Assembly (NCBI GenBank): GCA_021613535.1
Contig: CP075497.1
Coordinates: 1,364,001-1,428,000 of the forward strand
Direction: 5' to 3'
DNA from: Adineta vaga
Taxonomy: Eukaryota; Animalia; Rotifera
DNA length: 64,000 nucleotides
Below, in pieces: positions 12,847 to 64,000 of this stretch. Below the pieces are notes generated by a model. It was not told where the DNA came from. It saw only the letters and a program-made list of their open reading frames with translations, and made no database searches. Position numbers and translations under genes: made by a program. Numbering within the stretch: the stretch's first letter is position 1; each line of letters begins with the position of its first letter.

Positions 12847-14149
12847 ATGAATAGAATAGCAGGTATCAATTCAACAGATTCGAATCCATATTCATCAATT
12901 AAAGTAAATTAATCTTATATTTTTATTGATGTTTCATTGTTTTTCTTCATCAAGGATTCGAATATGAATGTTGTTGGATTAACATCAGATTGTACAAGTT
13001 TAGTTAATTCTCATCCATGGCGTCATCCTTATTCGAATCCTTATATCTATGATGCAGCTACAGCTGTTGCTTTAGTTGGCTATACTCCATATACAACTGG
13101 GTAAAGTATCGATATAACATTTTTTTGTTTGAGTAAAAAGAAGAATAAATGGAATCACTTAGAGAAAAAGAGAAGAATAGCCTCAAGTATAATGAAGTGA
13201 ATGTATTAGTCTCTAAACGATGCATATCTATTTCTCATATTGAACTGATGCATAGAAAATGAAGATCATTTTCCAATGAGACACATTAGAATTTGAGAAG
13301 TTATTTTCTCTTTTTGTTTTTAGTTATTCTCCTCACATGGATTTAGCTGGAAGAAGAAAAAATGCCACACGAGAAACAACAGCAACATTAAAAGCTTGGT
13401 TATATGAACATCGAAAAAATCCTTACCCAACTAAATCAGAAAAAGTTTATTTAGCTATTATGACTAAAATGACACTAACACAAGTTTCAACTTGGTTTGC
13501 AAATGCAAGAAGACGATTAAAAAAAGAAAATAAAATGACTTGGTCACCAAGAAATAGGTAAATTTATTTATTTTTCTTAGAAAAATTTTCTTTTTGTTTT
13601 CTTTTCTTAAAAAGAACAACCGATGACGATGATGATGATAGACATGATGAAGAATCCAATAGTTCTCAATCAGATAATCAGTCGAATTCTCCATCTATTC
13701 AAACCAATCAAATTCCATCATCATCATCAACAACAACAACAATTCAAAGATCATTTCATTATTTATCACCACCATTAACTATTCTTCAACATCATCAAAT
13801 TCAACCCGAAAATATTTCAACAGGTTTATCTCATTTCAATCAATCATTCATTTCAATCGAGAATCTTTTCTTTGTAGATGAAAAAAGTTTAAAAAGAAAA
13901 TTTGATGAAAATTGCTCCGAAGAAAGAAAAAAACGTTGTGGAATTTGGTCACTTGCAGATATGGCGGAAACAAATCATAATAAAAAACAAATCAATTCAA
14001 ATCAACAAGATGAACAAATAAGATCAACTTCAATTGCTTCATCATCATCATCATCTTCATCTTCTTCATCATCTTTATCTCCAACATCATCATCACAACA
14101 TTTAGAAAAAGTTCCATCAATTGTTGGTGCATTTAAACCATTTAAATGA
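12847..14149 (+). CDS. Irx: Iroquois-class TALE homeobox protein (~5 exons)
   Basis: Homeodomain [28 protein letters not shown]...[22 protein letters not shown], followed by an acidic patch and an IRO-box-like [10 protein letters not shown]. Confidence 0.95.
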
Positions 14150-37329: not shown

Positions 37330-37400
37330 TGCCACGGGCAGGAATCGAACCAGCGTTATCCGGACCACAACCGGGTGTACTACCATTATACTACCGCGGC
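37330..37400 (-). tRNA. tRNA-His (GUG)
   Basis: Acceptor stem gccgcgg/ccgtggc; anticodon arm ccgg-ttGTGgt-ccgg; T-loop ggttcgattcc. Confidence 0.95.
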
Positions 37401-53041: not shown

Positions 53042-54402
53042 TTATTCCATAAGATTGTTAATATCTGTACTAGTTGATGGTGGTCGTGGTCTTTGAAAAT
53101 CAGTTGTTGTTGATGAACTATGTTCATTAGCTAAATTCTGATTTGATGATGGACTTGAAACAGTTCTCGAACGTGATAAATGTTGTTGAGATGAGCTTGT
53201 TCTTTGTTGTTTAGGAAAAGCTTTCATTCGTTCATTTAATGCACGTTCTTCATCCATTTCTAGTGAGGATTCACTTTCACTTAATTGACGACAAAGTTGT
53301 TCACGACGATCAACCTAAAATCGAATAAAAGATAAAAGAGAAAAGAAGAAAAAGAAGAACAATTTACTTCAAGTTGTAATTTTCTTTGTAAACGTAAATT
53401 TTCATTTCTAATATCTTGTTCTTCTCGTACAAGTTGTTCCATTTTTTCTCGATGTGATTCTTGTGTAGAATTCAATTCTCTTTTTAATTTTTCTACTTCA
53501 CGTTTTAATTGTTGAATATGATCAACATTTGGTAATGAAAGACGATTTGTTAATTGAGGATTTGAACGATTTGGTAAGATTTCATCAGTTGAAATCATTG
53601 TTGAACTAATATTTACATTTGTTGAATCAATTGATGAAGATGGAGGACATTCCTTGAAGAAATAAAAGAAAGTTTTAAAGGGAAACGAAAAGAAAAGAAA
53701 AGAATATTACAAAATGATTTTGATCTGGTTGTTCAAGTTTTTGTTGAAGTAATCTTTTATCTGTTTCTAATTTTTCCATTCTTTTCCATAAACGATTTAC
53801 TAACGATTCTTGTTCTTTTTCTAATGTATTTTCTAATTCAATTTTTTCTCGTTTTAATTGTTCCAAAGTATTTTGTTTATTAATCGTTTCTGCTTCTAAT
53901 CGTTTAATTCTTTTCAATAATTTATTAATTTGTGAAGCTTGTTCTTGTTCAAGTGAATGTTCTAGTGATTGTTTTTCTTCTCTTAATTGTTGTAATTTTC
54001 TTGATAAATCATTTGTTAAAAATTCTTCTTCTCTTTCATAATTATTTGCTAAAGTTTCTTTTTCTTTTTTTAATTCTTGAATTTTTTTCAATAACGTATT
54101 CGAAATAAATTCTTCTTCTTGTTCAGCTTTAGCTTGCATATGAACACTTGCACTAAAAGAAAAGATTTATTTATTTATTTATTTATTAGAAGATAAACTA
54201 TGAATTTATATCTTAACTGTTTTAATTGTTTGATTTCTTGTTGTGAACCTTTTAAACGTAATTTAAATGTTTCAAGTTCAACTTTAAGAACTCGATTTTC
54301 TTGTGTTAATGAATCAATACGTTTTATTAAATGTTCACGATTAATTGTTGTTGAATCAGCTATGGATGAAACATCAGATTCACATTCACTATCGGTTTGC
54401 AT
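53042..54402 (-). CDS. CCDC6: Coiled-coil domain-containing protein 6
   Basis: [44 protein letters not shown] and [13 protein letters not shown]. Confidence 0.95.
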
Positions 54403-54748
54403 TGAATGAATTAAACTAAATGAAAAGAATGAAATTTGAAATAATTAAATTCTTTGTTTCTTAATTACTTTTCACCACTCATTTTTATTCTTTTGCGACG
54501 ATTCGATTCTTTCATTAAGAAAATATTCCTTTCCTCTAAAATGATTCGTTTTAACACATTTATGCACTTGAAATTCAAATAAAGAAAATATGAATTGATT
54601 TCGATTTGAATGAAGAAAAAAAAGGAATTTTTTTAGGAAATTCAAATTGAAAATGTTTGATTTATTTTTGAAAAACAAAAACGAATAAAATCAGATGGAT
54701 AATTCACGTGCTTTAAAGAAAAAGGAATAAAACAAAAGAAAACGTGAA

Positions 54749-56383
54749 ATGATTTTCCTTTTATTTTTTGTAAGTTTTTCAATTAATTTCTTTTCTTGTT
54801 CGAAAACATCAAATCTGTTTTTCTCAAAGATTTGTTTAAATATTTCTTCAATCTCAACACGTGCAATACAAATTACAAATGAGAATATTCAATCAATTAT
54901 TTGTAAAATAACATCTTTTTCTTGTGTCTTTTATAATTCTTTTCTCTTTTTTTTCTTTCAAAAAGCATCCAATGAATTCGTTTTGATTAATTTTTATGCG
55001 AATTGGTGTCGATTTAGTCAAATATTGAATCCAATTTATGATCAATTAGCTGAGAAAGTTAATCAAGAATATACGGTTTGTTTCGTCTGCTGGTTTTTAG
55101 TCAAATTTATTTGATAAATTTAGAAAAAAAATGTGATTTTAATTGGAAAAGTTGATTCTGATAAAGAAGGTAAGAAATGAAATGATAAAAGGAAAATCAA
55201 TTTTTTATTCTTTTAAGAGTTACTTACGAAAAAATATCAAGTCAATAAATATCCAACATTGAAATATTTTCGACATGGAATTCTTGTTAAACGAGAATAT
55301 CGAGGATCAAGGTAAAGTTATTTAATTTTGAATTGAAATTTTATATTTGTTTTTATTTTTCAAAGAAATTTTGATTCTTTATTAAATTTTATTCATGAAC
55401 AACTTCAATCACCAATTCGAAATATCAATGAAATTGATAGAAAATCTTCATTTATTATTGGATATTTTCATAATCAACAATCAGAAAATTATCAAATATT
55501 TTCCAAAATTGCAAATCTTCTTCGTGATCATTGTCATTTTGTTCATTCAATTAATACTGAATTAGAAAATGAATCAATTTATTATCATCCATCTGAAGTA
55601 AAGAGAAAATATTTTTCTTAAATAAAATTCAATTGATAAATTTAGTTTTCCAATCAATTCAATGAAAGTTATAAAGGAAAATTAAATGATGAAAATCAAT
55701 TCTATACTTGGTCTCATAATAAATGTACAGAATTAGTTCGTGAAATAACATTTGAAAATGCCGAAGAATTAACAGATGAAGGTTTACCATTTCTTATTTT
55801 ATTTCATCATCCCAATGATTCTCAATCAATTCTTTTATTTAAACAACAAGTTCAAAAACAACTTCAACATCAATTAGGTAAAGATTTTTCTTTTCGAAAA
55901 TTTCTTTCTTTTATTTCTTCTTTTTTCCAGGAACAATCAATTGTTTACATGCTGATGGAACGAAATTTACTCATCCATTAAAGCATTTAAATAAACAAAT
56001 ATCGGATTTACCATTATTAGTTATTGATACTTTTAAACATATGATTCTGTTTCCAGATTTTAATCTCATTTCGTAAGAAATTTGCCGTTCTCGTTTTCGA
56101 AAGAAAATCTTTTCGTTTTAGAATTAATGGAAAATTATTAGAATTTGTTAAAGATCTTCATTCAGGAAAACTTCATCGAGATTTTCATCAAACATCAATT
56201 AATATTGAAGTAAAGAGTTCTTTTTCTCCAAATGAAATTTCTCCAAAATTCATTTTTGTTTTTTTCTAGGAAAATCTTGATACCGGTGATGTAATAAATA
56301 GAAAGAATACTAATCCACTTGAATCGATATTTATTCATTTGAGTCCAAGTCGAAAACGTTATTCATTTCGTGATGAATTATAA
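54749..56383 (+). CDS. ERP44: ER resident protein 44
   Basis: Thioredoxin motif FYANWCRFS; VREITFENAEELTDEGLPFLILF; C-terminal RDEL. Confidence 0.95.
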
Positions 56384-56451
56384 AGCAAATCTATTTACTT
56401 TTTTTTGTCATTTGTTTTAGATAAAAAAACAAACTTTCATTTTCTAATTGA

Positions 56452-57442
56452 ATGCGTCGGCATCGTCAGATAGCAATTTTAGGATATCCAGGTGTTGGGA
56501 AATCTTCTCTTGCTCATCATTTTGTTTATAAACAATATCATGATGAATATGATCCAAATATCAAAACAAGTTGGAAATTTATTCGATGAAATTTACAAAA
56601 AAACAAATTCTTCTTATTTAGATCTTCAATACCAATGTGATATCAATGGAAGAGAATATGATTTAACAATCATTGATAATGCTGGATCAGATCAATATAC
56701 AATTAATCATAGTGATTTAGAAAATAGTGATGCATATATTCTTGTTTATGCTATTGATGATAAACAAAGGTTTGACATTGATTAAAATGAATTTATATAA
56801 GTACTAGCGGACGTGTCTGATGTTTCGATGTCGAAAATAAAGCTTGAATTTTGATCCTCTTTCAGTCTATAAGCTCTCATGTGATAGTTTGTTTGAGTTT
56901 TTGATTAGAGACAAAATCTTATAATTTTTTCTTAGTTTTCAAATGGTTTCGAAAATTCGAGAGAAAATTTTCTCAACAAGTCCAATTACAAAGTGAGATT
57001 TGATTTGAATTTTTCTTTTGAAGAATTTTATTTTGTTTTTAGAATTCCAATTGTTTTAGTTGGAAATAAAATCGATCGAACTGATGAAAGGTAAATGAAA
57101 GAATTTAAATGAAGATTTTCAACAAATGTTTATTTGTTTTAAGAGTTGTATCAAATGAAGAAGGACAAACTTTAGCTAATAAATGGAAAATACAATTTAT
57201 TGAAACATCTGCTATGGATTTTAAGGTTTGATTTACTTTTCTAAAAATCTAATTAAATTTTCAATTCTATTTAGAACGTTGAAGAAATCTTTTCGAAAAG
57301 TTTTAAATCGATGGATAATATTGATATAGTTGATAATCATTCGAATTCGAATTCGAATCCATTCAATGATTTTATTGAACAAAAAAGTTTTTCATCTCGA
57401 ACAAAGAATTCGTCAACAAATAAATCTTGTTCAATCTCTTAA
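56452..57442 (+). CDS. Rheb-like small GTPase, divergent
   Basis: RQIAILGYPGVGKSS, YDPNI, DNAGSDQY, LVGNKID, ETSA; CAAX box CSIS. Confidence 0.8.
56804..56911 (-). mobile_element. Possible tiny non-autonomous Helitron in an intron of the Rheb-like gene
   Basis: Minus strand starts TC(TCTAAT) and ends CTAG|T, with a subterminal palindrome tttcga-ca-tcgaaa; the host intron is ~165 nt versus a typical 50-60 nt. Confidence 0.4.
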
Positions 57443-57617
57443 AGAAGATTCTCTTTTTTTTTTCTTGTATATAGATTTCCATTTTCTTTTTCTTTTCTTT
57501 ATGATTTGATTATTCAGTGATGATGAAAAAAAAAACAAACGATCAGATATATGAACAGTAAAAGAGATTTGTTTATTTAGATTTGAAATGATTTAAAAAA
57601 AAAAGAGGAGAAAAAAA

Positions 57618-58973
57618 ATGACATTTGAAAATTTTCTTAATTGGACGGTTTCAATTGATTGTGGATCATCAATTGGAAATTATCAAGGAGAAATTAAATC
57701 AATTGATGGTATTAATCAAACATTAACATTAAAAAATGCATTTCTTAATGGAATTTTACTTGATCAAGAATTAATTATAATTAAATCGAAAGATATCTTG
57801 GATTTAAATCTTTTATCTCAACCTGGTTCATCATTTCAAATTCCAAAACCAATTCCAAAAAAGTCAAATCAAGATCTATCTCAACAACAATCAAAACCTG
57901 CACCGATTGCAAATAATAATGGTCTTTTCTTCGACAGAGATTTCTAGAAAATTAAATCGTCAATTTCATTTTCTTTTAGGTAATAAATCGAATCGAAATA
58001 GTTCATTAAAATCTTGGTCAGATGAAGATATCAATGAAGAAATGAAAAATCGTTTGATAATTGAATCATCAACAAAAACAAGTCAATTATCAGATAAATA
58101 TCGTTGTGATCAAATGATTCTTGAACATAATAACGGACCAATTGATTATGAGCAAATTCAATTACCTGTTCCAACAACAAAAAAATATTTAACAGGTTTT
58201 CTTTAACAAGAAACATTTTTTTAAGCAAAAAAGAATTCATTTTAGATGAAGGTTTAATCATTCCTGCAATAAATACAGAATTACGTGATAAATTATTTAA
58301 TGCTGGTGAATATTATGGTTATTCAAAAGAACGTCGAATAGAATCGATGGGTCGTTGTACAAGTGATATGTGTTTGCATTTATTAGGTGGTACACAAAGA
58401 TTATTAGTTAAAAATCGTCATCAACATCCAACAATAATAGTATTAGCATGTTTAACAGAAATTCAAGGTGCATATGCTATATCAGCTGGAAGAATTTTAG
58501 CATCAAGAAATATTCGAGTTTATTTATATTTACAACCAAATACAAATTTAATTCGAAATAATCTTGTTGAAAATGAATTACAATTATTTCAAACAACTCA
58601 AGGAATTTTAACAACTAATGTTTCAGATCTTCCTCATTCACCAGTGGATTTAATTCTTAATGGATTAGATTCAGCAAATAATTCCGATTCTGTTTTATTT
58701 GCTAAACCATGGTATCGTGAAATAGTTCAATATTGTTCACGTTTACAAGCATCTGTTATTGGTGTTGATCCTCCATTAGATGGTGGAGCAATTGAATGTA
58801 AATATTCATTAGTACCATTATTACCACTTGTGGCAATGTCATCGAAAAATGTTGGAAGACTTTATTTATGTGATTTATCTTTTGGACAAAAAGTATTTCA
58901 ACATTTACATATTCGTTATGCTTCACCATTTGGAGCGAAATCATTTGTTGCTTTACATGAGAATTCAAATTAA
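57618..58973 (+). CDS. EDC3: Enhancer of mRNA decapping 3
   Basis: N-terminal LSm (VSIDCGSSIGNYQGEI), KYRCDQMILE linker, C-terminal YjeF-N (LLGGTQRL...GRLYLCDL...SPFGAKSFV). Confidence 0.92.
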
Positions 58974-59199
58974 ACATTCAACGCTCTTCTTCTTTTTTTT
59001 TTATCAAAACAAAACACATTCTCTTTCTTCTCTTTTTTCTTTGTATTTTTATTAAAAATTCATTAAAAAGATGATCAAAAGAAAAAGATTTTTTTAAAAT
59101 TATGAATTCAATTGATAAAAGATTTAATTTGGATTTCAGTATGTTATTGAAACTAATTAGATTTAATTCGGTGAGTTTCATTATTTCTTCTAGATACTG

Positions 59200-59625
59200 A
59201 TGGTTTCTTCTAATTTGTATATTTTTTTATTCTTTTTTTCTTCATTAATTTTATATTATATTTACTCTCAGATAATAGTAAAACGATCAATGGCTTCGAT
59301 AAGTTCCACTGAATATTCAGCTTGTTTAACAACTGTATCGAATGATGAAGAAGCACGAAAATTATCTCGATCAATTGTTGAATCGCATCTTGCTGCTTGT
59401 GTGAATATTATTCCAAATATTCGTTCTGTTTATGAATGGAAATCAACGATTCATGAAGATAATGAATTGATTTTATTAATTAAAACAAAAAAAGATCTTG
59501 TTCCAAAATTAATTGAATTTGTTAAAAAAAATCATTCATATGAAGTTCCAGAATTAATTGAATTACCTATTCAAAATGGAAATCCTGATTACCTCAAATG
59601 GATTGATGGAATTGTTAAACAATAG
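59200..59625 (+). CDS. CUTA: CutA family protein (alternative start at 59290)
   Basis: LAACVNIIP, SVYEWK, HSYEVPELI and YLKWI. Confidence 0.93.
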   Translation: MVSSNLYIFLFFFSSLILYYIYSQIIVKRSMASISSTEYSACLTTVSNDEEARKLSRSIVESHLAACVNIIPNIRSVYEWKSTIHEDNELILLIKTKKDLVPKLIEFVKKNHSYEVPELIELPIQNGNPDYLKWIDGIVKQ

Positions 59626-60885
59626 AGATTTTTTTAGAGAAAAGACTAAAATAAAATTTGACTCTTTTTTTTATTCGTTCTCTTTGTTCTTATCTCACGA
59701 AGACATCGTAGGTGTTGAGAAAATTATGTTCTTTCAATGACGATTGGGAGAAACGAGTTTGAATGAAATCGAAGTGTTATATATTATATGAAATAATATT
59801 GATTGTTAGCATAGATTCTGGGTACCAATCAAGAAATATCTACATAAAAAACTTCACATGTTGAAAAATCAAAGCAGATATCGATATCAATATGTTTAAA
59901 ATGTCTCTATTTGCAGTCTCTGTATTTCTCGCGGTGCATAGCAGAGAACGACAATTTATTCATGAAATCAATTAGCTAATGTATTAGTAGTTGAGTCAGG
60001 ACAATTATCAATTAACATTTTCATTTTCTCGTCTTAATTAACGATGACAAGATTCACATAAGAGACTGGATAAGAAGTTTAACGACATATCTTTACTTTG
60101 AATTTAAATTAGATGAGAGAATTTTACAATATACAATTTAACTTATGATCATTTTAACCCAGATGATATTTTATAAAATCTATCAGTAAATAATTGACTA
60201 ACTATTTATTTTAAAAACAAATCATATTGCTTTAAATTTAATGAAAAGTCTCTAAGTTATTTATTCAACATTACTTGTGGATATGATATTTCGATTTATT
60301 TAAAATATGTATGTAATTACATAATTGAATCTTAGTTAATTAGTAGTTATATACTCTTTCTTATATTATGGTTTTATAGTCACTGTTCTCGTTTCTTCTA
60401 CTAAATCCTAAACTTTTCAAATTTTCATGTTACTAATTGTTTATAACTTTTGAACGAACAACAAATATGAATATTAATCAAAATGATATCTAATGATAAC
60501 TTGATAGTTGTTAACAATCTATTGATGCGAACAACCAACTGATTTTTACATTAGAATTTGTATCAACAAAAGATTGATATATTTTACATTGTTATTGTAA
60601 GAAAAAAGTTTATCAAAACTTGTCGCGAGGATCATCGTATAATTCGTTCAGCTTCAATATTATCACATTTTACACATCATAGACGTTAGATATCGTTTTC
60701 ATCGGTCAGTTTATTACTTAGCATGTCCAAGTGATATTATATAACTAAGAACATATTGAACTGATGATTTTTGTTCATTGTTTCGACGTCAATATATGTA
60801 TTGACATGAAAAAATATCTCATTGCATTGCATATCAACATATAAATTTAGAAATTATACAAACACATTATTCTCTTCATTATTCA

Positions 60886-63023
60886 ATGACATTAATCACA
60901 TGTTTCGACGATTAACCAGATCTCTTCCTTATCGAACTGTTTCATTATTTATCTTCATTCGATATTCTTTGGTCATTTATGAATTTAGATAATCGTATTC
61001 GGCAAATAATTCATGAACGAGGTTTCTTTCGACGTATTAATTTATCATCAACATCTTTATATAAATTTGATAAACTTTTTACATTTCTTCCATTAACTCA
61101 AATTCAAACACTTGTTATTAATATCGAAGCATCATCTCTTGTACTTTCGCGCTTTCCTTATTTACCTTATTTAACTACATTACGATTGTATGGCTTACGT
61201 ACCTTGAAATATGCTTACAATTTTATTCTTCATCATTCACATTCACTTGAACATCTTACATTATAGACAGATGGTTTATTTCAACCCGTAAGTATAATTC
61301 CAGTTTATGATATGATTGCTATTAAACTAAGAAACATTTAGCAACATCATTATGTTTTTCTACTATAACATTTCATATTAAACTAGGTTTTCCCACAATT
61401 AGGAAAAAAATTTCATTAATTTATTTTTCTTGTTTTTCTAGTTTGGTTTTGCAGAATCTGTTCTCTACCCTCAAGAGCGTCTTGAAAAATTCATGGAAGA
61501 GATTCTACCACATTTAAATGTACTTCGTTCACTTGATTTTGGTCTAGGTATTGATACGGGTTTTCCATTATGGCATGTAACAACAATAGAATGTCCTCTT
61601 AATTATCTTCGTATGCCTTTACAGGACATAAAACAATTATGTCAACTTATGTCACTAGAAAAACCTTCAATTACATTGAAAGAATTACATGTTGCAATGC
61701 GTTATTTATGTCCAGGAGGTTGGAATGATTTACCATACGGATTAGCATTATCTAAAATGATTAATTTACATTCGTTCAGCTTAGTTCAATCAATATTTAC
61801 TGAAAATAGAATTGCATGGTCTACTATTGAATTTCTTACAGCTCCAAATGTGATGCCTGTACTTCGACAAATGAATTTGGTTTTTTTTATTACTATCAAA
61901 GAATTAAAATGTATTAATGAATCAACACTGTTCAATGATGATCGTTAAATTGATATTCAGTTTGCTTTTATTATGGATGAGAATTCCTTTACTATTCAAT
62001 TAAGTAAATATATACCAAATAGAAGTCGTTTTCATCCAAGACAAATAGTTGGCGTTACGTGTACACAAAATGTATTGAAACGAGAATATGAATACATGAT
62101 CAATCTCAATTGCTATGTGAGTATAATTATATATGTATATATCTGCTCGATTTCAGTTTAATAATAATATTATTTTTCTTTCGTTTCAGTTTGATCATCT
62201 CCCACAGACTTTTCATGTATGGTACACTTTACCATGGGCTTTTGATCAATTTTTTACATTGAAAAAGTCAAATCAATACATAACTAAAGTAGAAACATGT
62301 GCTCCATCACAATGCAATTCATCCATGATTTATACATCTCAACTTCGTACACTTGATATATCTCAAAATAAATCATTACCGTCAATTGTTTCAATGCCGC
62401 ATGTTGTTCAATTCAATCGTATTAATACAGTTCATTTGTCATTTCATGATTGACCTTCTGGTTTACATCTTTCAAATCTTCATCATATTACATTAACAAA
62501 TAATCTTACTGCATTAAAAACCGTCTCCTTATTTCCACGTACTATTCGTTCAATCCAACTAATATTTCATGCTCGTATGCCAAACTTTGTTTGTACTGAT
62601 TGGTCTGTTCTTCCTTCACTTTCGTCTTTATCAAAACTCACTTCATTACGAATCATTTTCCACGATATGAATATAAGTTTTGATGAAAATATTTGTCAAA
62701 TTATCGCTGAAACAGCATCAATACTTGTTCATTTTGACATTTGTTTTCGACGACAGTCCGATGTAATAACAGAACCTGATGATTTTAATCCACCTAATGT
62801 AGTAGAACCTTTCATTTGGGATATGTATAATATAGAACCTGATCTTGTTATTGGAGAGGACGGTAATCTTGGTGTTGGTGCTTTACGTTTTCAGAAATCA
62901 ATCATTATGAATTATCAAAAATCTATCGAAGAAATACACCGTCGCATTGTAAGTTTATCATTTTGTGTTAAACTGCTCATTGTTGTAGAAGAAGGAAAGT
63001 GTGGATTGACTGTTTGGTTCTAA
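60886..63023 (+). pseudogene. F-box/LRR-like gene with four in-frame stops (3 exons)
   Basis: MTLITCFDD*PDLFLIELFHYLSSFDILWSF F-box-like start, LxxLxL repeats and WYTLPW; stops at 60913, 61264, 61946 and 62451. Confidence 0.8.
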
Positions 63024-63229: not shown

Positions 63230-63960
63230 TGTTGGTCAGTCATTTGTTGATAAATACGTGGAAGAATCTTTTAATTCGATTTCTTTGTCTGTTCAAGTTA
63301 TGTTTGAACTTTTTTTCCAATAAACTCAAATGATTTCCGATTGGTTTATTCTGAAAAGAAAAAAAACGAAAGAAATTTTTTAAAATTGAATACAAATTGC
63401 AATCATAGTATCAATAACTGTTTGATAATTGATTTAGTTCATTCGATGATCCATGAAATAAAAAACTTCACTTTTATTTTCTTCAGGACGATTTTCAAGT
63501 TTAAGATATTCTAAATGAATATTTACCAAATGAACAAATCTATTCAGAAAAAAAGATGAAAACAGATATTATCTCTTACTCTTTTTTTAAGATCTACAAA
63601 ATTGATTTTAACTGTTAAAACATCTTCATAACTATTATCAATCACCTACATTCGTTTCATATCGATTTGTATGTGTTATAAATGTGTAGGATAAGACATG
63701 GACAGTTTCAAGAATATGATAATATAGAGTTTCCTGTAGTTGATTTCACATGTTTGTAGGAAACGAAACTCATGTATTTTGATTCAGTAAGATTTTCTAA
63801 TCGAAGTTCTTTCTCAAACTGCTCCATAGCAGAGATTCGAGTAAACTCAATTTAACCTTACAAATCTTTCCGTTCTCATGCGAGAAATTTAGTTGATCTT
63901 TATTCTTTGATTTCGCAATGCTGAGAAATGATGATATTTTTTTTCATTAATAGAAAAGTG
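63230..63960 (-). pseudogene. Possible decayed multi-exon coding remnant, unidentified
   Basis: Intron-like spacers with splice signals separate coding-like stretches that contain stops; no family recognised. Confidence 0.25.
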
Positions 63961-64000
63961 TTGCTCTGGTAGATCAGTGTTGCCACCGATCCACACGATT

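Follow-up and report, generated by a model that had tools for sequence, protein, structure and literature searches.

A candidate conserved spliced-leader operon of ERp44, Rheb-like, EDC3 and CutA genes in the bdelloid rotifer Adineta vaga

Described operons and a four-gene cluster in Adineta vaga

Spliced-leader (SL) operons have been described in nematodes, tunicates, flatworms and chaetognaths. The SL2 operons of nematodes are characterised by a Ur element and by a coupling of CstF to SL2, and tunicate operons are typically without an intercistronic region. In bdelloid rotifers a 23-nt leader is reportedly carried by 50-65% of mRNAs, so that trans-splicing alone is no mark of an operon; trans-splicing of single genes and alternative acceptors in hsp82 are also said to occur. 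Here we analysed a window of 64,000 nt from the bdelloid Adineta vaga (C6:1364001-1428000 of an assembly of six contigs and 100.8 Mb; GC 28%), in which the genes for ERp44, a Rheb-like GTPase, EDC3 and CutA follow one another on the plus strand (54749-59625 of the window). We lean, with a little better than even confidence, towards reading these four genes as a conserved spliced-leader operon, and the link between ERp44 and the Rheb-like gene is held with higher confidence than the operon of all four.

The cluster resembles the SL2-type operons of Caenorhabditis elegans in that unrelated, co-oriented housekeeping genes are separated by gaps ranging from some tens to several hundred nt and containing a U-rich tract, with a trans-splice acceptor (putative in the rotifer) close to the ATG of the downstream gene and an order that is conserved among relatives. 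It differs in its leader, as nematodes dedicate the SL2 family to downstream genes whereas the rotifer has one known leader family with two one-base variants. The operons of the tunicates Ciona and Oikopleura are alike in using one leader class for operon and non-operon genes, in a compact genome with short introns. Gaps in relatives of A. vaga can likewise be nearly nil (27 nt in one case and an AG directly followed by the ATG in another), whereas the stop-to-acceptor distances in A. vaga itself are 37, 138 and 166 nt, and those in Rotaria are longer.

Within the Gnathifera, operons of the chaetognath Paraspadella gotoi have been defined by a spacing of less than 250 bp and at least one leader-bearing gene, and no operon-specific leader was found (PMC12460157). 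The A. vaga cluster would fit this definition once leader reads are seen. The two animals are assumed to differ in their leader and to have independent origins in this respect, and the chaetognath data are reads and Iso-Seq whereas ours are assembled contigs. A methods paper of 2021 stated that spliced-leader operons are unreported in rotifers (PMC7986045), and a chaetognath paper of 2025 loosely counts rotifers among the lineages with trans-splicing and operonic transcription, without data; our full-text literature searches returned no report of rotifer operons. If the operon reading is correct, these would be the first operons for the phylum Rotifera, adding one phylum to the list and bearing on whether operons arise wherever leader trans-splicing exists. 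Bdelloids, which recover from desiccation arrest, would gain a genome feature that has been associated with a quick return from growth arrest, and polycistrons would have to be considered when genes are modelled and promoters assigned in rotifer genomes.

Genes, gaps and their conservation among bdelloids

The earlier note on this DNA had named the four genes and described them as co-oriented, which is borne out by Pfam scans (run on single exons of the gene models) and by NCBI proteins. The first gene (54749-56383, plus strand) is identified as ERp44 by its Pfam Thioredoxin and Thioredoxin_6 matches, a CRFS active site in the thioredoxin domain and a C-terminal RDEL; its translation also has a signal peptide, and its introns are confirmed by RNA contigs. 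The second gene (56452-57442, plus) is a Ras-family GTPase (Pfam Ras) of six exons, with all five introns confirmed and a CaaX box (CSIS) at its end; among solved structures its exon 1 is closest to RhebL1/Rheb. The third gene (57618-58973, plus; three exons, 415 aa) is EDC3 on the basis of its LSM14 and YjeF_N domains, and its product is identical to the A. vaga protein I4U23_027671, with P0001 100% identical to the last exon. The fourth gene, CutA, consists of a 30-nt mini-exon encoding MLLKLIRFNS (59141-59170, plus), an intron of 101 nt (59171-59271, donor GTGAGT at 59171) and a second exon (59272-59625, plus; Pfam CutA1, E = 3e-37). The CutA product is identical to the A. vaga protein of the corresponding NCBI model (I4U23_027672; P0021, 127 aa), in which MLLKLIRFNS is followed by IIVKRS, and the mini-exon is kept in relatives. 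The second intron of the Rheb-like gene (56770-56935) is 166 nt long, whereas the other ten introns of the cluster measure 48-60 nt; the counterpart of the long intron in Rotaria socialis has about 60 nt, and the A. vaga core is GC-richer and is possibly a small insertion.

The gaps between the first three genes, 68 nt (56384-56451) and 175 nt (57443-57617), are exactly those given in the earlier note. The third had been put at 226 nt, with a CutA start at ATG 59200, a position that lies within the intron of the NCBI model. Since CutA starts at ATG 59141 both in that model and in all relatives, the third gap is 167 nt (58974-59140). Co-oriented genes with very short gaps are thus found in A. 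vaga (68, 175 and 167 nt) and in its relatives (27-534 nt).

The T-rich tracts and acceptors that had been noted in these gaps (AG at 56419-56420, 57579-57580 and 59192-59193) are all present, the last of them inside CutA intron 1 (see below). In the first gap TATAAA lies over the ERp44 stop, followed by a T-rich tract and the AG at 56419-56420, which leaves the Rheb-like gene a 5' untranslated region of 31 nt from 56421. In the second gap AGTAAA (57557-57562) is found 17 nt ahead of the acceptor AG (57579-57580), itself 37 nt before the EDC3 ATG. The third gap contains two ATTAAA motifs (at about 59051 and 59063), about 70-85 nt ahead of an acceptor AG (59138-59139) that is one base before the CutA ATG. 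Candidate 3'-end signals sit just upstream of all three acceptors (TATAAA, AGTAAA and ATTAAA, respectively). The second gap also holds UGUAUAUA at 57467-57474 (UGUAAAUA in relatives), a Pumilio-type motif that is near-invariant about 25 nt past the Rheb-like stop in five aligned species.

The intercistronic acceptors resemble the eleven RNA-verified cis-acceptors of the window. At a GC content of 28%, between 6 and 18% of 45-nt stretches drawn at random from the window contain an acceptor-like motif, and the acceptors taken alone are therefore weak evidence. Their conservation across species lifts them beyond chance, as each downstream gene has a conserved acceptor, lacking a partner donor, 0-38 nt upstream of its ATG. 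Six other bdelloid loci share the Rheb acceptor and the ATAAAAA that follows it. In every relative that has the respective junction, the sequence reads AG/ATAAA for Rheb, tttAG/ATTT for EDC3 and cag/N ATG for CutA (the slash marks the predicted splice site), the last being kept in Rotaria as well as in four uncultured bdelloids, one of them the GC-rich L038.

Gene order is conserved as well. Rotaria socialis has DUF2046 (minus strand), Thioredoxin, Ras, LSM14-EDC3 and CutA1 in identical order and orientation, and a tblastx comparison with this species was collinear over 53042-59639, with no homology past CutA. Conservation elsewhere, in this locus-level comparison, is partial. R. sordida keeps Ras-EDC3-CutA. 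An ohnologue on contig C3 of A. vaga itself (67-86% identity) retains DUF2046, ERp44 and Rheb but neither EDC3 nor CutA; the gap there measures 199 nt and includes an acceptor. ERp44 is also followed by Rheb in three metagenome contigs, after a gap of 27 nt in L029, 167 nt in L030 and 100 nt in L036; in L029 the distance from the ERp44 stop to the acceptor is 17 nt and EDC3 is also present, its ATG directly after an AG. EDC3-CutA is kept in L023, L026, L027 and L038. We rejected L029 as a spliced three-gene RNA, as it retains introns and is genomic, and kept it for synteny only. A second R. sordida locus (L016/L017) also has Ras-EDC3-CutA, with no clear ERp44 and with truncated products (140, 283 and 72-105 aa), and may be a decaying duplicate.

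Transcripts across the junctions and the spliced leader

The RNA data for A. vaga were assembled contigs (de Bruijn) rather than reads, from four runs of four studies (X1, X5, X11 and X13). These contigs skip eleven GT..AG introns of 48-166 nt and are therefore RNA-derived. In each of X1, X5 and X13, one contig spans the last ERp44 exons, the 68-nt gap and the six Rheb exons, and is continuous over 56270-56569 (ERp44 stop, gap and Rheb exon 1); the gap stretch is single-copy in the genome. In X11, a contig of 2096 nt runs from 56421 through all Rheb exons and the second gap into EDC3 as far as 59001, and is continuous over 57273-57920. The EDC3 contig of X5 includes CutA exon 1 up to its final base (59170), and a separate X11 contig covers 59141-59519. 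Every junction is bridged by a cis-spliced RNA contig in at least one data set, that between EDC3 and CutA as far as exon 1.

The 56421 start of the X11 contig is the first base past the predicted Rheb acceptor and does not coincide with a difference between C6 and the partial copy of the locus on contig C4 (see below). It is only suggestive, lying 2 bases off the 56419 expected for a fork between leader and genome. Other contig ends were considered and set aside. The CutA contigs of three runs start at 59279, next to a G/A difference between C6 and C4 at 59278 that interrupts the assembly graph, and this start was rejected as a trans-splice site. The ends at 57534 (in an A-run) and 59001 (in a T-run) were rejected as poly(A) sites, as homopolymer lengths differ between C6 and C4. 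A loose end of X11 at 56453 belongs to a transcript from C4:13.05 Mb, with a chance match of about 18 nt. Looking up A. vaga transcripts through the exact CutA protein returned only a C4-type DNA metagenome scaffold.

The leader itself was read from a back-to-back pair of SL RNA genes (L007) at the end of the window. The 3' part of one gene is within the window (63954-64000, minus strand), and the leader exons lie beyond it, at about 64042-64063 (minus) and about 64193-64219 (plus). The leader reads GCTTATTA[C/A]AACTTACCAAGAG and is followed by GTAAAT; with its ending CCAAGAG it is the 23-nt leader already described for bdelloids; an Rfam scan of the window gave no match to a spliced-leader family. 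The two genes of the pair (L007:241-270, minus, and 394-420, plus) differ at the ninth base, C or A, and both variants are also found at C4.

Leader sequence was observed on EDC3 in a relative. In an uncultured bdelloid (66% identity), the EDC3 contig L020 opens with the final 11 nt of the leader, attached to the 5' untranslated region 38 nt ahead of the ATG; L019 has the unspliced, genomic form of this site (...ttgttgaag), and the shared AG is where L021 begins. The four contigs of this group (L019-L022; two Logan runs and two JGI assemblies) extend beyond the EDC3 stop by about 250 nt, across ttttcag/T ATG, as far as the donor of the CutA mini-exon. Together with X5 of A. vaga, EDC3 contigs reach CutA exon 1 in five data sets. 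In another relative (84% identity), Rheb and EDC3 sequences are joined in one intron-less RNA contig (L025), in which the last three exons of Rheb, up to TNKTCSIS, are followed by a gap of 212 nt, where the acceptor is conserved, and by the entire EDC3. The 3' end of this contig reads cag/a ATG, for which we make no claim as a CutA start, as it is unlike the other mini-exons.

The proposal of a trans-spliced operon in the earlier note is thus partly supported, by the conservation of order and acceptors, by the bridging contigs and by the leader on a relative's EDC3; in A. vaga itself, leader letters were found at none of the acceptors among the contig loose ends. The ERp44-Rheb link is the strongest because the bridging sequence is unique and recurs in three runs, the gap shrinks to 27 nt in a relative and the pair is kept in the ohnologue. 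With 17 nt (L029) or 37 nt (A. vaga) from stop to acceptor, the gap would leave no room for a promoter before Rheb, and the same would hold before EDC3 in L029, where AG adjoins the ATG.

On the operon reading, RNA polymerase II would initiate in the 346-bp gap (54403-54748) that ERp44 shares with a divergent gene on the minus strand (DUF2046 by Pfam, CCDC6-like), and would transcribe all four genes from this putative single promoter; the corresponding divergent pair in R. socialis is 404 nt apart. The cis-introns would be removed from the polycistronic precursor, and single-gene mRNAs would be released from it by trans-splicing together with the formation of a 3' end on each upstream cistron, the two being presumably coupled. 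The 22-23-nt bdelloid leader would be added at the unpaired acceptors at 56420 (Rheb-like), 57580 (EDC3) and 59139 (CutA). The acceptor at 59193 might sometimes be used, which would give CutA a hydrophobic N-terminus.

Alternative readings and neighbouring features

A number of observations weigh against a single operon of all four genes, beginning with the missing leader letters in A. vaga noted above, and they are best considered together with the explanations that they would favour. Of these, the one that survives best is a partial or hybrid operon, in which ERp44 and Rheb-like are co-transcribed while EDC3 and/or CutA are also, or mainly, transcribed from internal promoters, with the leader spliced onto their own outrons. 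We regard this as possible and give it a modest chance. The second and third gaps are long in A. vaga (175 and 167 nt), and the Rotaria gaps are longer still (227, 534 and 288 nt). Sequence blocks in the second gap are common to Rotaria and the species of L025 and L029, and could be internal promoters. The C3 ohnologue retains only ERp44-Rheb. In addition, 56643-61498 has a 98% copy on contig C4 (C4:14069106-14072084, L009), which begins within Rheb exon 2, where it abuts unrelated GC-richer DNA; ERp44, Rheb exon 1 and the putative promoter are absent from this copy, whereas EDC3 and CutA are present. The longer gaps, the blocks shared with Rotaria and the C4 paralogue together make the EDC3 and CutA links the weaker ones.

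The C4 copy also affects the assignment of the RNA. From 56643 onwards the RNA contigs share many C4 alleles and are mosaics of C6 and C4, with seven variants matching C4 and eight C4-private changes absent, so that the expressed haplotype is a third sequence. As a result of this mosaic, the Rheb-EDC3 and EDC3-CutA contigs do not certainly derive from the C6 locus. The expressed haplotype is about equally distant from the C6 and C4 references, so that the RNA does not demonstrate expression of C4. Against internal promoters stand also the Rheb-EDC3 bridging contigs in both A. vaga and L025, the entry of EDC3 contigs into CutA exon 1 in the five data sets, the EDC3 ATG that abuts the acceptor in L029, and the fact that the conserved blocks of the second gap are mostly deleted in A. 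vaga. L025 calls for some care, as its first 150 nt (L025:1-150) are Rab-like (TAGQERF...), match no Rheb-like locus and are joined at the conserved LVGNK region. This head is a probable assembly chimera, and mis-joins are thus possible in such assemblies.

An older partial copy, comprising the end of EDC3 and CutA (85-93% identity), lies at C1:2549865-2550367 (L010). At all three places with CutA, a back-to-back pair of SL RNA genes is found within about 1-4.5 kb downstream, as if clusters of SL genes had carried flanking DNA along with them.

It is less probable, and in our view unlikely, that there is no operon at all and that the compact genome simply places four independent promoters close together, partly within upstream genes, with leaders added to single-gene transcripts and bridging contigs produced by read-through or transcript overlap. 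A contig covering two genes is no proof of a single molecule, as transcripts overlapping by 31 nt would suffice to join, and no single A. vaga run bridges EDC3 to CutA exon 2. The CutA contigs of X5 and X13 extend at least 650 nt past the stop (59660-60300) into DNA free of open reading frames, and read-through coverage is therefore not specific to the gaps. This coverage could represent read-through or a further transcription unit. The same contigs skip 59821-59986, which is an indel relative to the C4 copy and not an intron. On the other side, the distance from the ERp44 stop to the Rheb acceptor (37 nt in A. vaga; 17 nt of the 27-nt gap in L029) would be too short for a promoter, ERp44 and Rheb are found in a single spliced contig in three runs, and the order has been retained in two bdelloid families and in an ancient ohnologue, with synteny stopping right after CutA. 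That the RNA support is merely an artefact of chimeric assembly of paralogues or of DNA contamination is very improbable: the contig ends at 57534, 59001 and 59279 are indeed due to C6/C4 differences and the L025 head is chimeric, but contigs that retain the gaps have their introns cleanly removed, so that their source is not DNA, the ERp44-Rheb gap is without a second genomic copy, and independent assemblers and samples are concordant.

The four-gene operon remains the reading that we prefer, and it may include a use of the AG at 59192-59193. ATG 59200 is not the main start of CutA, but frame analysis showed that it opens a hydrophobic open reading frame in frame with CutA exon 2. This frame is also found in P0025, P0026, P0030, P0032, P0046, L026, L027 and L038, and is retained in at least nine bdelloid sequences, the GC-rich L038 among them. 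The inner acceptor (ttctag/at) is conserved as well; it follows the donor of CutA exon 1 by about 23 nt, a distance too short for the two to be paired. Judged from the sequence, 59193 may therefore be a candidate alternative leader acceptor, giving a second CutA isoform with a hydrophobic N-terminus from ATG 59200. In more general terms, we hold it evenly balanced whether bdelloids have conserved operons that are resolved by a single leader, with gaps of nematode-like length and no dedicated second leader, and in which two leader acceptors 54 nt apart choose the N-terminus of CutA, either a short basic presequence or a hydrophobic signal or anchor.

Elsewhere in the window, the earlier note had contrasted the cluster with Irx and Hox4 genes. 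A simple six-frame scan of the window found no WFQNRR-type motif of a Hox gene, so that Hox4 was not recovered, whereas an Irx-type TALE homeobox (WFANARR) was present at about 13343-13500 on the plus strand. The window also contains a tRNA gene at 37330-37400 on the minus strand.

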